64,000 bases of DNA from Oikopleura dioica (lineage: Eukaryota > Animalia > Chordata). A program made the position numbers and the translations under genes. Positions 45,680 to 51,734 of this stretch are shown here, piece after piece. Each line of letters starts with the position of its first letter. Positions within the stretch are counted from its first letter, which is position 1. The stretch covers positions 11,842,001-11,906,000 of the forward strand of contig OU015568.1 in NCBI GenBank assembly GCA_907165135.1, written 5' to 3'. Under the pieces are notes generated by a model, which saw only the letters and a list, made by a program, of their open reading frames with translations, did no database searches and was not told where the DNA came from.

Positions 45680-46489
45680 TCAGAAATCATCAGAGGTGCA
45701 CCCTTGAATTAAGGGCCGCCGTATTATCATTCGGCTGAATACATCGACGTGGAAAATCAGTAGCTGCTGTAAAAAGACAGTCTTCGAGCAAATAAAAAAA
45801 AATGTTTTTCGCTCTACGTAGCGTAACAAATTAGCCCGTTCGGGGCTACTTTATGAACTAAACCAGACTTACGCTCGTGGAAAAATAACATTTTAACCGG
45901 CTTAGGGGCGAAAGTACTGATACTCTTCTAAGGGATCAACTCGGCGCGGCTAAACATCTACTCTCTTTCGAATAACGTAAGAATCAAATCAAGTTAGAAT
46001 CAAAATACACAGTCATTCAATAGAAGAGTTCAAAAATCCTGCGTTTTCAAGTCCAATCATGAATACGAAAATGACATTAAGACAAATTAAAAATTATGAA
46101 GCTCGGGGTAAATAGCAAAAGGCGTTGAATTTATTTTTGATTGGTCTGAAACGGAAGTTCTAATGATCAACGTGATGCATGTTTCTAAACGCTCTCTTTA
46201 GCGGAACTCACCGGAGCGAAGTACAAATCGCTTCCCCCAATCGGGACTAAGTGTTTTTTTAAACACAGAGATTTTCGAAATTTTGCAGCTCACAGAAATC
46301 GGCAAAAATTATGCAATACCCTCACATGACCTTTTTAATTATTCCAAATTGACGATTTTCAATTGGTACTAGAGGGTTGAAAAAGCCCGCAGAAAACCCT
46401 TTAAGTTCACCTTAATCGAAAAAAAGAAGAAAATAAATAAAAATATTAATCAATTTTTGATTAGTAACACGCGCCTCTGGCTAACTTAA

Positions 46490-47218
46490 GGGACCCGGGC
46501 GAGTAACGCGAAGGCCAACTTCACGCGCTCGCCATTGATCTTTCAGAAAAGCTTTTTTGAAATTTCTTTTTGCTAAACATATCTTCATTCCCTCAGCTTT
46601 CATCTCCCACTTTCAGACTCATGATTAATTCTTGAGCTAGAGTGAAAAAGAGAAGTTCAACTTCAAAAGGCATCAACTCCTGCAAACTTCATTTTATTGA
46701 CATGAAAGCAGCACCATTGAAAAGCCCATTAAATTCTGAACAGATCATACTTAATGCGCTAAGCTGAAACTGCAGTAATGAGCGATTAAGGCCAGATAAA
46801 CAAGAAAACTTGGTGCGGGCGCAGCGGGAATCATGTCCCGGGAGCCCAAAATAGCCCGATCGGAGTGTCCTGCCTTGCTGAGAGCGCTCAGTCTGTTTGT
46901 TTATCAGCGCGTTCAGGGCAATTAGTACAGTTCTAGCTTAGCGCATTAAGTATGATCTGTTCAGAATATAATGGGCTTTTCAATGGTGCTGCTTTCATGT
47001 CAATAAAATGAAGTTTGCAGGAGTTGATGCCTTTTGAAGTTGAACTTCTCTTTTTCACTCTAGCTCAAGAATTAATCATGATGTAAAAAGTCTGAAAGTA
47101 GGAGATGAAAGCTGAGGGAATGAAGATATGTTTAGCAAAAAGAAATTTCAAAAAAGCTTTTCTGAAAGATCAATGGCGAGCGCGTAAAGTTGGCCATCGC
47201 GTTACTCGCCCGGGTCCC
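46490..47218. mobile_element. Palindromic (foldback) MITE A, 729 bp, TTAA TSD
   Basis: Ends GGGACCCGGGCGAGTAACGCG; ~310-bp inverted arms, outer ~280 bp nearly identical apart from one short indel; ~100-nt centre; TTAA at 46486-46489 and 47219-47222. Confidence 0.92.
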
Positions 47219-47746
47219 TTAATCACCACTGTACCTGTACTTTAACAATCGATTTCCTTCTAACAGTCAACTTCTTATCTTCTTTCCGACCTCTCTACAT
47301 AATTCCTTATTCTCTATCCAGTTCTGTACTTGTTTGTTTAGCCAACTTCCTTTTTAGTACTCGGCAAAACAGAAAAATTAGGCCCGCCTGGAGGATCGTG
47401 CCTTGCGCCAATCGCTCCTCCTCCTTTTTTGATCAATCAATAGGAGAGGTCTCAGAAAAGGCGCGCCAACGGGAGAACCCGCTTTAGCCTGCGGCGCGTG
47501 CGTAGCGAGCTCCACACTTGCACCATTAATTATTCATAAAACCAGCTTATTGACGGCGGCTTATCGTTAATAATCGACTTCAGACTTCATTGAACTACTT
47601 GCGATGATCTGATACTTAATTTTCCTCCCTCCTTTCGACTGAAATTACCGTCGCCCTGAACTCTTTAGCAAAAGGGCGCCAGTAGATTCCCGCTGAGAGA
47701 GCGCAATAAATTCTTGAATAACAATGAACACTGTGGTAAATTTGTT

Positions 47747-48296
47747 TTAATGAAAGATATCTTCGGGGAGATAAATTTCACTTTCGGTCACAGTTAAAAT
47801 ATGTTCTCCTTCGGCGTTGAGAATCGGATGAGTAAAGTGGTCAGGCAAAATTATTCTCTCGCATTGACTTGTGATGATTTCGTATTCCTCGTCTGATTCT
47901 ACTAGTTGTTCTTCGTCGTCATCTTCGTTGCGCTCCGCTTTATAAAAGTTTTAATTCATGGCAGGTAGAAAATTTATACACCTAGATTTTCGATGATCTT
48001 CTTGTCTGAGACATTGTTTTCGCCCGATTTACACTCAGTTTTAGCTACAGAACCATCATCATCGTCGCTAATCAAAATGAATCCATCGTCTTCAGCACAA
48101 TCATCGCTACATTCCTCGAGATCAGGAAGACCTGTAAGATCTATTACTTGCTCTTCTCTAAAATTTTTCTTCGTTTCCATGAGATCGTCTCCTCTTTCTT
48201 TGAAATCAGCCTATTGAAAAGTTTTAATTCTCACTTCTTTAAATTTCACGTCACCTCTTTACTGGTGTCTTCGTTGGAGAACCCGTTCATGTTCAT
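47747..48296 (-). CDS. Three-exon acidic 153-aa protein with SUMO-interacting-like motifs
   Basis: Exons 48255-48296, 47982-48210 and 47747-47937 with two 44-nt GT-AG introns in matching phases (0, 1); motifs EQVIDLT and FILISDDDD. Confidence 0.8.
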
Positions 48297-49029
48297 TTTC
48301 AGAAAATAATTCTCTCGAGCGATTTGTTTGGAGAATTTCTAGCTGTCGTTCAGACGAGAATACAATTTTTAGAACAGAAGAGCTTGTCCCTACTCTAGAA
48401 AATATCCTCGGAAAGAGGCATAACTGTTATGCTCAGAGCTCTTGAAAGGCAAACTAGGCAACTAATCATTGTTTGCAAAAATTATACAGCAGTTACAGAT
48501 AAAAGTCTTGGCACTTTAATTGAGCAGATATAGTTTTTTCCCATCCATAAGAGGCTTTAAAATCGATAAGCTAGGAATTGTTGTTCAAGTACCCACTCAG
48601 AGGATTAACAATTAATTATTTTTCCACGTCTATTCTAATCTAAGGGGGTTATCTCCTCCTTCTCTTGGGGTCTTTCTTGATTGCAAAAAGAACAAAGTTT
48701 GTGAATGCAGATTTATTGAAATAAGGAAAGAGACAAGAAAGCAGAAAGCAATGAAAATCTAATATCGAAAGAAAAAAAGTGTCAATTCAATAAAAAAAAA
48801 TTCCAATCCGTCTATTACATAAAAAATGGGCACAGAAAACATAAAAAAGCGCAACAAAAAATAAAAACAGTTTATATCAAGAAAAAGTTTTTTTGCGGTG
48901 TGACTGATCGTTCCAAAAATTTAGTAGCGGGACAAGTGACTTCTTTTCTGGGGCTTTTGATGGACAGAAATTGTCTCGTATTCTTATCGAAAACTCCATG
49001 CCTGTTCAACTTCTTTTGTACAACTCTCA

Positions 49030-50050
49030 AAACAGGGTATATTTTTGAAAATCACTATTTCGGAGGAACGAGACAAGCGTAGCTCCGGTGATTTGACAGA
49101 AATATACAGACGAGTCTGAACATCCACGCCAGAAAAGTACTGAAGGGTGCTCGTGATATAGATTCAAGCTTGTTCGAAATCTATAAACATCCGAGGACCC
49201 ACCCTGATCAGCAGCGCCAACAGATAAAATCCGAAAACAGGCAACCAAACACTGTTCAAAGGATAAAAATTGATACTATTTAGCTACAGTTGTTAATCCA
49301 CTGCAGTGGCAACGCTGAATGAAGTATATTAATCCGTTCCTTTCGCAGAGGTTGATAGAGGAAAGAACTTCTTCTCCATCATCATCTGCGGAGCGACGTC
49401 TTCTTCCGAAAAAATTCCCAGAAGAAGGCTTTTTAGTTGTTGTTGTCGGGGCTGAATTTCAGTGATCTTTGTTGTTTTAGTATTTTTACCTGAAGTTTGC
49501 GCCGCGTAGACCGTTTGTACTTGCTTGGGGAGGTGAATTTGACAATTCTCGAGGTAGCCGCTGCCGAACATGGACACTTGAATCCCTCTTTAGCAAAAAA
49601 AATTCATCGACGTCGATTTACCTGCTACAGGGAGAACGGTGAAAAAGAGTAGGAAGATGGCCTTAACGTGGAAAGAACCAACTGGGACGACATACTTCGA
49701 GCCGGGGCTCTCGTAGGCAACGGACTTGTAAGAGACAATCTCTTCGCTAAAAACAGGGTTGTTGAAATCAAGGAAGACTAATTATTTCCAGGCTCGAAAA
49801 TTCCCCCAGAACGACCTTTTATTAATCAAAAAGTGTTAATCTTTGCTTTTTCTTACTCTATCGGCTTCTCTCTGTGCAAACTCACCTGTTGTCGGCTCCC
49901 GTGGCTTTCATTTTGTGAAAAAATGAAGCTGCTCCTCGTTCTTGTTGAGGAGCGGGAGTGAAGTTGTCGCAGCTCCGCTTCGAATTAAATCGCGAACCAT
50001 TGACGCAACTGGCAGCTTATCATCACCAACCGTTTCTCATGCTCTGGTCA
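49030..50050 (-). CDS. Multi-exon hypothetical protein with Thr-rich stretch and RRRRS furin-like site; ends uncertain
   Basis: Exon-like blocks at ~49885-50040, ~49622-49750, ~49490-49586 and ~49290-49452 bounded by GT/AG; ...PTTTTKKPSSGNFFGRRRRSADDDGEE... Confidence 0.4.
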
Positions 50051-50707
50051 CATTCCTTATTTATGATTTGCACAGATTGAATGATCAGCATTATATAAGG
50101 AGACGAACTTTAGAACATCCAAAAAAGTAGGAGTGACATGAAATTTTCCATTCTAGTTTTCAGGAAAGGAATACTTATCTTTCTTCTTTATCCAGAGACA
50201 GATTTCATGTCAAAAGATATGCATGGTTTTGATATTAGTGGTATCCTTTTAAAGTCTTGTCAGCTGTGGATCCCTAGAGAAAGCTTCCCTCCGAGATGTT
50301 CGACTAAAACCTCGTGAAAATGCACCTAACAATGCCGACACATTCGAGTTTGCCCTGCCTCAAGACTGGCTTTCGGACTACGTTCTTTACGCAAGGAAGA
50401 AGCAGAAGAGAGGTGGAAAGTTGATCCATAGATTTTCTTTCTTGTGATTTTATTCAATAAAGTATTTCATGATCATTTCAGTAATTTATTCGGGTAAGAA
50501 ACATAAAATTTATATCATAAAAATTATATGAGAAAAACAAACTTAATTTTCTACATCAGCACTGATGACTTATGTGGTTGAGAATTTTCATTTAATTTTT
50601 TCATGATGATTTTTTATCATAAATGGCTTTCCTCCATATTCTAGCGCATTCACTCATGATGCATTTCAATAGCAAAGCTATTTAAATGCTAATTATAAGC
50701 TAATTAA

Positions 50708-51450
50708 GGGACCTGGGCGAGCAGCGCTGAGCCAAACTTCACGCGCTCGCCGTTCTTCTTAGAAATAAGATTTTATGAAATTTCTTTTTGTAAATTATAT
50801 CTCCAAATCTTCAGCTTTCTTTTCCGATTCTTAGTTTTCTCTATCATTCTTGGTTGATGAGCTAGCGAGAAAATGAGAAGCTCAACTTCAAAGGCATCAA
50901 GTCTTGCAGACTAAATTTTTCTTCATGAAACTAGCACCATTGAAAAGAGCGTTAAATTCTGAACAGATCCCACTCCATCAGCTAAACTAAATCTGTACAT
51001 ACTGGAGATAGAGGCCAGATAAACAAGATAACTTAGCGCCCGCGCAGCGGGAATCATGTCCAGGAAGCCCAAAATAGCTAAATCGGAGCGTCCAGCCGCG
51101 CCGCGACCAGCTGCGCGCGCTAAGTAATTTTCTTAATCTGGCCTTACACGCCTATAAGTACGGACTTAGTTTAGCTGATGGAGTGGGATCTGTTCAGAAT
51201 TTAACGCTCTTTTCAATGGTGCTAGTTTCATGAGGAAAATATTTAGTCTGCAAGACTTGATGCCTTTGAAGTTGGGCTTCTCTTTTTCTCGCTAGCTCAT
51301 CAACCAAGAATGATAGAGAAAAACTAAGAATCGGAAAAGAAAGCTGAAGATTTGGAGATATAATTTACAAAAAGAAATTTCAAAAAATCTTATTTCTAAG
51401 AAGAACGGCGAGCGCGTGAAGTTTGGCTCAGCGCTGCTCGCCCAGGTCCC
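50708..51450. mobile_element. Palindromic (foldback) MITE B, 743 bp, TTAA TSD; same family as element A
   Basis: Ends GGGACCTGGGCGAGCAGCGC; ~330-bp inverted arms; TTAA at 50704-50707 and 51451-51454; centre homologous to that of element A. Confidence 0.92.
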
Positions 51451-51734
51451 TTAAAAGAGAAACTCTTTTTTCAAAAGTGGGATGAGTTTTTAAAAAAGGC
51501 TGAAGCAAGAAACCCCACGGGGCAAGTTGCTTATTAAAAATTTGATTAATTGTGAATAATTTATTTGCAAAAAAGTGGAATGGTGAATTGTGTAAACAGG
51601 CAGTGTAAAAGTGATGCTCCTTTTAGAGCGAAGCAAGATGCTGAAGAGTGGCCTCTGATTTGTTCGCTAGTTGAATTGGTGGATTCTGTTCTTGGGCTCT
51701 AAAATACGATGAATGATTGAACGAAAGAACATGT

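Follow-up and report, generated by a model that had tools for sequence, protein, structure and literature searches.

Inverted copies that lie in cis, such as the palindromes of sex chromosomes and the inverted repeats of plastid genomes, are kept identical by intramolecular conversion while their spacers and borders diverge, and the correction of quasipalindromes by template switching is a comparable arm-to-arm process. Those genomic palindromes and inverted repeats are resident and of kilobase to megabase scale; here we describe mobile palindromes of 740 bp. Two of them, elements A and B, lie in a 64,000-nucleotide stretch of DNA (the window) on the pseudoautosomal region (PAR) of the appendicularian Oikopleura dioica (OKI2018_I69; genome 64.28 Mb, 19 contigs). 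We consider it likely that they are transposable elements of the miniature inverted-repeat type (MITEs) from the Kolobok superfamily, inserted at TTAA, in which the outer arms of ~280 nt have been repeatedly homogenised by episodic gene conversion within the element.

The closest precedent is the cycle of homomorphs and heteromorphs described for the terminal inverted repeats (TIRs) of maize Mutator (MuDR-class) by Hunter, McCarty and Koch in 2023 (PMC10401008). In Mu, heteromorphs, whose TIRs are dissimilar, exist as multi-copy elements, and homomorphs are regenerated when one TIR is copied onto the other (PMC10401008). All three features of that system (symmetric TIRs specific to subfamilies, a multi-copy heteromorph, here the pair L038/L039, and the regeneration of symmetry) recur in O. 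dioica. Mu belongs to a different though related superfamily and has a target-site duplication (TSD) of 9 bp, whereas the elements described here sit in TTAA; in O. dioica, moreover, the process can be quantified site by site, with a movable inner boundary and near-neutral evolution of the arms. Galileo and FB of Drosophila resemble the O. dioica family in their very long TIRs, many subfamilies and chimeric copies, and a published proposal for Galileo holds that recombination and conversion are drawn to long TIRs (PMC3573991). They differ in that their arms hold tandem subrepeats, whereas the O. dioica arms have no tandem repeats, and in belonging to the P superfamily with 7-bp TSDs. The Kolobok T2-MITEs of Xenopus (Xmix/T2) share the TTAA duplication, RR/YY termini, transposase-bearing relatives and long-lived families of several subfamilies (PMC6004289, PMC9587614); the O. 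dioica MITEs differ from them in their foldback-like arms of ~280-340 nt, in termini that read GGGAC rather than AGGRR, and in their appendicularian host. Our literature search returned no Kolobok family, and no such MITEs, described for O. dioica. The behaviour itself is thus known from other transposons with long inverted repeats, and it is shown very clearly here: the family provides an unusually clean, site-by-site record of a mobile palindrome keeping its halves identical, in a laboratory animal with a small genome.

The features of the two elements, in window coordinates, are as follows.

46486-46489, no strand: TTAA left of element A, putative TSD; TTAA stands on the left in 40/40 full-length copies
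46490-46779, + strand: left arm of A, homogenised part of ~290 nt, starting GGGACC (from inverted repeats)
46780-46920, + strand: asymmetric centre of A, comprising a diverged inner-arm zone and a conserved core (from left/right mismatch and core conservation)
46822-46838: core 17-mer of A, CAGCGGGAATCATGTCC
46921-47218, - strand: right arm of A, ending GGTCCC (from inverted repeats)
47219-47222, no strand: TTAA right of element A
50704-50707, no strand: TTAA left of element B
50708-50994, + strand: left arm of B, homogenised part of ~287 nt, with the first inner mismatch at about column 288 of the arm alignment (from inverted repeats)
50995-51163, + strand: asymmetric centre of B, comprising diverged inner arms and a conserved core, with the 17-mer at 51045-51061
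51164-51450, - strand: right arm of B (from inverted repeats)
51451-51454, no strand: TTAA right of element B

Elements A (46490-47218) and B (50708-51450) are palindromic, ~740 bp long, end in GGGAC...GTCCC and are bounded by TTAA on both sides. The arm segments of A are 97-98% complementary (134 + 161 nt) and those of B 99% and 97%, with 87% in the inner part near the centre; left and right differ at four positions in A and five in B within columns 10-280 of the joint arm alignment. Between the elements, identity is 72-80% by block and 74% overall, which puts a figure to the remark of an earlier note, made on this DNA from its letters, that the two are homologous yet differ at about a quarter of arm positions. 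The arms account for ~75-90% of element length (~280-340 nt each); their sequence is unique, and no tandem array was found within the arms of A or B. The elements contain no open reading frame of note, and Rfam (E up to 1) and ARAGORN searches over 46.0-52.0 kb returned no RNA family and no tRNA in them. Folded as RNA, A makes one long hairpin with a stem of ~300 bp (-551.7 kcal/mol, z = -67.7 against shuffles), which follows trivially from the palindrome and is uninformative on transcription. The two elements lie 4.2 kb apart, and by our own arithmetic 50 copies in 64 Mb should give ~0.2 such pairs; finding two family members this close is not surprising.

With A and B as queries, over 45 full-length copies, 737-764 bp in length, were found in the genome (copies and loci are denoted by L numbers). 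A 24-nt end pattern has 44 + 44 genomic matches, far beyond chance when set against 0 + 1 for the reversed control, and the core 17-mer occurs ~52 times at no more than one mismatch; together these counts indicate a family of ~55 members, of which the arm analyses below cover 40 full-length copies, all from one genome. TTAA is present on the left in all 40 and on both sides in 37, and the sequence beyond it is unrelated between copies, which points to a TTAA target-site duplication. Every subfamily, and both of the longer transposase-bearing relatives described below, ends in GGGAC...GTCCC. Within that frame the terminal sequences differ by subfamily, and each variant is mirrored at the opposite end: the copy-specific end variants of the earlier note are therefore real and present in both arms, but they mark subfamilies rather than single copies. 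A and B are from two of the family's deepest subfamilies. Multi-copy, non-coding, shorter than ~800 bp, bearing TIRs and a TSD, and with larger coding relatives, the elements have the attributes of MITEs.

From each of the 40 copies we took the left arm, and the right arm in reverse complement, and aligned them over 340 columns. Left/right mismatch per copy is 2-7% in columns 1-280 and climbs to 22-34% only in columns 281-340, in agreement with the ~280 bp of near-identity first noticed in A and B. In a tree of the outer 280 columns, arms group by copy, with strong support for many same-copy pairs: the side label changes 39 times, where shuffling gives a mean of 28, and at least 30 of the changes are dictated by branches with good support. 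In three copies (L014, L043 and L044), the two arms are identical over all 280 columns. The inner 60 columns behave in the opposite way, as arms there cluster by side and carry old, fixed left/right differences. The earlier note proposed placing all arms in one tree; the arms pair by copy in the outer 280 columns, which supports its reading, and by side in the inner 60 nt. A first tree of all 340 columns had suggested clustering by side within young subfamilies; the inner 60 columns were the source of this signal, and the outer tree set it right.

Arm-to-arm copying leaves its clearest mark in mirrored substitutions, which we counted by parsimony on the copy tree as changes shared by the two arms that agree in column, base and branch. 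Internal branches carry 189 mirrored and 126 single-arm changes (49 left-only, 77 right-only), and mirroring accounts for some three quarters of arm substitutions there; terminal branches carry 82 mirrored and 302 single-arm changes (148 + 154). Controls in which columns were shifted give only 2-9 mirrored changes, a hot-spot control (same column and base on different branches) gives 7.5-11 expected against 267 observed, and permutation of terminal branches gives a mean of 4.3 (maximum 14 in 2000 permutations) against the 82 observed. Mirrored substitutions are thus 20-30 fold above every control. The long internal branches consist almost entirely of them, as on the stem of L040/L044 (42 mirrored, 1 left-only, 3 right-only). 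Together with the pairing of arms by copy, this excess supports the idea already put forward for A and B that new mutations are copied from arm to arm.

Copying is episodic. The ratio of mirrored to single-arm changes is heterogeneous across terminal branches (chi-square 147.8, 30 degrees of freedom, p = 1.7e-17), ranging from 10:0 in L014 and 11:1 in L033 to 0:19 in L011 and 0:17 in L008. Occasional resets in active lineages, followed by decay of the resident copies, fit this pattern; a process that works steadily on all copies does not.

Copying can also be seen as tracts. Twice independently, in the clade L028-L037 and in L006/L009, an unbroken block of left/right differences has disappeared in columns ~288-335, while the sisters of both groups retain at least nine of the lost differences. 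In both cases the sequence of the right arm now stands in the left arm. The blocks are tracts of conversion, each covering several sites and running in one direction, and lineages vary in how far inward the perfect palindrome reaches. Mirrored changes show an excess of weak-to-strong (W-to-S) substitutions that is borderline (odds ratio 1.43, p = 0.053) and only a hint of GC-biased conversion. We set aside two other possible traces of the process. An outer-to-inner rise of the mirrored fraction (p = 0.02), considered as a clue to where tracts start, is mostly driven by the outermost, selected bin; and a 14-site left-then-right pattern near L038/L039, considered as a sign of copying direction, makes better sense as a recombinant, a heteromorph wrongly placed on the copy tree.

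The class of the family is indicated by two longer elements with homologous arms and TTAA flanks. One (L052:501-5173) is 4673 bp long, with its own arms 98-100% alike over ~359 nt; the other (L053:2537-5602) is 3066 bp long, with arms 87-90% alike. Both hold a two-exon gene, the first exon of which matches the Pfam model PF20700, 'Mutator-like transposase', with scores of 26.4-32.3 bits around a cut-off of 26.5, the exons having been searched one by one. In the ESM Atlas, the annotated protein P0001 falls among PF20700 proteins (feature score 0.96, template-modelling (TM) score 0.70), and its neighbours include proteins that join PF20700 to YqaJ or to RNase_T/Exu (DEDDh) domains. Accessory nucleases of just these two types, YqaJ and RNase_T-Exu, have been published for the KolobokE and KolobokD lineages (PMC9587614). 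In the transposase alignment, the motifs VAVDG, IACDxDA, HxYGDHxMCDxNCP and SPVEYxHA are conserved as judged by eye. Kolobok elements are defined by a TTAA TSD and by termini of the form 5'-RR...YY-3', unlike the CCC...GGG of piggyBac (PMC9587614, PMC6004289). The Pfam match and the matching domain architectures support assignment of the family to the Kolobok superfamily, and the TTAA flanks, the GG..CC ends and the PF20700 transposase of arm-sharing relatives agree with the earlier preference for Kolobok over piggyBac; L052 and L053 are also the kind of autonomous element with the same termini for which that note had suggested a search. A piggyBac partner was considered and rejected, as the termini are GGG...CCC and neither of the two genomic PF13843 loci, which we compared together with their surroundings (L050, L051), shares DNA with the MITE or with L052. 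The centre of the MITEs is common to all subfamilies and missing from L052 and L053, and the MITE arms form one clade in the arm tree with the arms of L052 and L053 outside it; from the common centre and the single clade it follows that the MITEs had a single origin.

We propose that cut-and-paste transposition carries the elements into TTAA, presumably by means of the PF20700 DDE transposase of longer relatives with which they have arms of ~300 nt in common. In lineages that are still transposing, one arm would be copied onto the other, within the same element and dependent on homology, so that a mutation in a single arm is either erased or spread to the second. The arms could then change in a roughly neutral fashion while retaining their symmetry. 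Such copying would often span most or all of an arm, could push the perfect palindrome inward, and would not be obligatory at each transposition. Our leading candidate for the route is the mending of a break or gap with the other arm as template, possibly following one-ended cleavage by the transposase; single-strand fold-back template switching during replication or repair is the alternative and may be equally possible. For maize Mu, a break at one end with repair from the other TIR has been proposed (PMC10401008), and a few junctions in O. dioica recall this model. The right TTAA is absent in only three of the 40 copies, L014 (CCC/AAAC), L043 (CCC/AAGG) and L033 (altered end), and these have 0, 0 and 1 mismatches between their arms, which places them 1, 2 and 5 of 40 in symmetry (post-hoc probability 0.001). 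TTAA-less junctions with symmetric arms would fit, on thin grounds, a break at one end followed by resynthesis from the other arm.

A stronger version of this idea is that the transposase itself restores symmetry. An abortive cut at the right end would be followed by resynthesis of that arm from the other, leaving a TTAA-less scar, and the conserved core of the centre would be a cis element that stabilises the palindrome or directs repair. We think this unlikely, though worth keeping in mind; if it were true, arm mismatches would count the time since the last such cut.

Several points weigh against episodic conversion within a Kolobok family as we present it. The Kolobok label leans on a Pfam model named 'Mutator-like' and on matching domain architectures. 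Mirrored changes on terminal branches are rarest in the outermost bin, where tracts initiated at the ends would by themselves predict otherwise; selection on transposase-binding tips could be the cause. The association between TTAA-less junctions and symmetry is post hoc and involves three copies, and L035, in which both ends are damaged, has 10 arm mismatches. With one genome, conversion in situ is inseparable from conversion in a lineage that moved later, as a cut-and-paste element leaves no donor copies, and ~15 family members lie outside the analysed set. Finally, the private changes of A and B are confined to single arms (three against no mirrored change in A, two against none in B), from which it follows that both inherited their symmetry from recent ancestors, with the copying having occurred earlier in their lineages.

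Could symmetry be renewed at every jump? Under obligatory regeneration, each transposition would rebuild one arm, for example through a single-stranded fold-back, and mismatches would date the insertion. Arm mismatches are indeed seldom common to related copies at different loci, and terminal branches fall into 'all mirrored' and 'all single-arm' types, as expected on that scheme. However, L038 and L039 occupy different TTAA sites and have ~45 arm mismatches in common. Their arms are ~20% apart, the left being B-like and the right coming from another lineage, which makes the pair a heteromorph. L028 and L029 likewise have four arm mismatches in common. In both pairs, therefore, the two arms passed unchanged through the jumps, and across the family the inner-arm differences are inherited by side. 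These cases make an obligatory mechanism very unlikely. Arm homogenisation also means that TIR identity is not a reliable insertion clock in such families, and that arm identity alone is no proof of youth.

A second possibility is selection for the hairpin, either as RNA for RNA interference (RNAi) or as DNA for transposition, with mirrored changes arising as compensatory point mutations. The element does fold into a stem of ~300 bp, and mirrored changes are the classic mark of a selected stem. Compensatory mutation should be far slower than neutral change, yet the arms lag only slightly behind the unconstrained inner zone: steps per site on internal branches are ~1.0 in the arms and 1.2-1.3 in the never-homogenised inner zone, compared with 0.45 in the terminal 20 nt and 0.33 in the core. 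An arm rate so close to that of the inner zone indicates that arm sequence is nearly free to change as long as symmetry is kept. Nor are wobble-compatible mismatches in excess on either strand (113 against 101 among the single-arm mismatches, alongside 204 transversions). The near-neutral rate and the absence of a wobble bias argue for arm-to-arm copying rather than selection on the stem. Blocks of at least nine adjacent differences were, in addition, exchanged at once for the sequence of the other arm, and the heteromorph L038/L039, despite its dissimilar arms, was still able to reach two loci. We therefore regard hairpin selection as highly improbable.

Pure inheritance, in which A and B would be copies of two old masters that already had identical arms and no arm was ever copied onto the other, appears plausible when the two are viewed singly. 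The closest relative of A (L002) is 98-99% identical to it, seven relatives of B are 97-98% identical, and the private changes of both are single-arm only, as noted above. The refuting scenario of the earlier note, arm identity inherited within near-identical subfamilies, accordingly holds for A and B individually, but it does not hold family-wide. The MITEs have a single origin, attested by their common asymmetric centre, yet symmetrical subfamilies have come to differ by ~25% in their arms; the observed 267 mirrored changes face 8-11 expected; and the inner 60 nt, with 22-34% left/right divergence, display the outcome of evolution without copying. Separate palindromisation of half elements in each subfamily, which might rescue this explanation, is opposed by the common centre. 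Its probability is close to negligible.

Finally, an artefact of assembly or polishing, with the reads of one arm mapped onto the other, is conceivable for a polished long-read assembly in which the arms are reverse complements within 750 bp, but there is next to no chance of it: mis-polishing could not produce 10-42 derived mirrored states in a lineage, in agreement with the phylogeny between loci on different chromosomes; many copies retain 5-20 arm mismatches; and long reads span the whole element.

On internal branches no part of the element is better conserved than the core of the centre (46819-46874 in A, 51042-51100 in B), with 0.33 steps per site against ~1.0 in the arms; on terminal branches the core decays like the arms (0.58 against ~0.5-1.25). 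RNAalifold, applied to the centre of 22 copies, found no structure supported by covariation (covariation term +0.06). The core is conserved as sequence and may be a cis-acting site. A metagenome scan with the core 17-mer gave 88 matches, all attributable to chance and none with the MITE.

In columns 72-79 of the arm alignment (~46565-46572 in A), at a local palindrome, GAAATTTC, a cluster of four left/right differences recurs in the unrelated copies L005, L012 and L028 and is present as a mirrored cluster in L009. Such a pattern resembles a small flip or a switch of template inside a local quasi-palindrome.

Further transposase-like sequences are present in the genome. Twelve places besides L052 and L053 were found, including open frames of 672 and 731 amino acids. 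These two frames are uninterrupted and contain the homologues at C4:6998705-6999868 and C5:7518220-7519344, which are 53% and 38% identical, respectively, to the product of the second exon of L053; both are candidate Kolobok transposase genes, intact and without introns, or candidate domesticated copies. A B-type end at C5:3207286, with a transposase fragment 1.3 kb inside, was considered as a B-like coding element and rejected when the tested segment proved to have no B-like arm. The two piggyBac-like (PF13843) loci, coding remnants or genes, lie at C1:539284-540003 and C5:1088671-1089363 (L048, L049).

Both transposase-bearing elements contain a minisatellite between the two exons (L052:3190-3530, L053:3680-3890), which is probably intronic, as the stretch is spliced out of the annotated P0001. 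The left arm of the 4.7-kb element also contains a 1.57-kb insert (L052:610-2178) made of many tandem and inverted units of ~64 bp, with ~10 nt of arm sequence duplicated at its borders. Among the MITEs, one B-type copy has a hAT-like MITE nested in its left arm (L027:787-1500; inverted ends CAGAGTTTGAAAT..., 8-bp duplication CGCTCGCC), and L036 is truncated at nearly the same arm position. An unrelated element of ~760 bp (L053:1042-1803), flanked by TTAA and with ends GGATATAGCC... and ...GGCTATATCC, is located 0.7 kb upstream of the Kolobok element of 3.1 kb; its flanks and end sequences place it in a second TTAA/GG..CC family.

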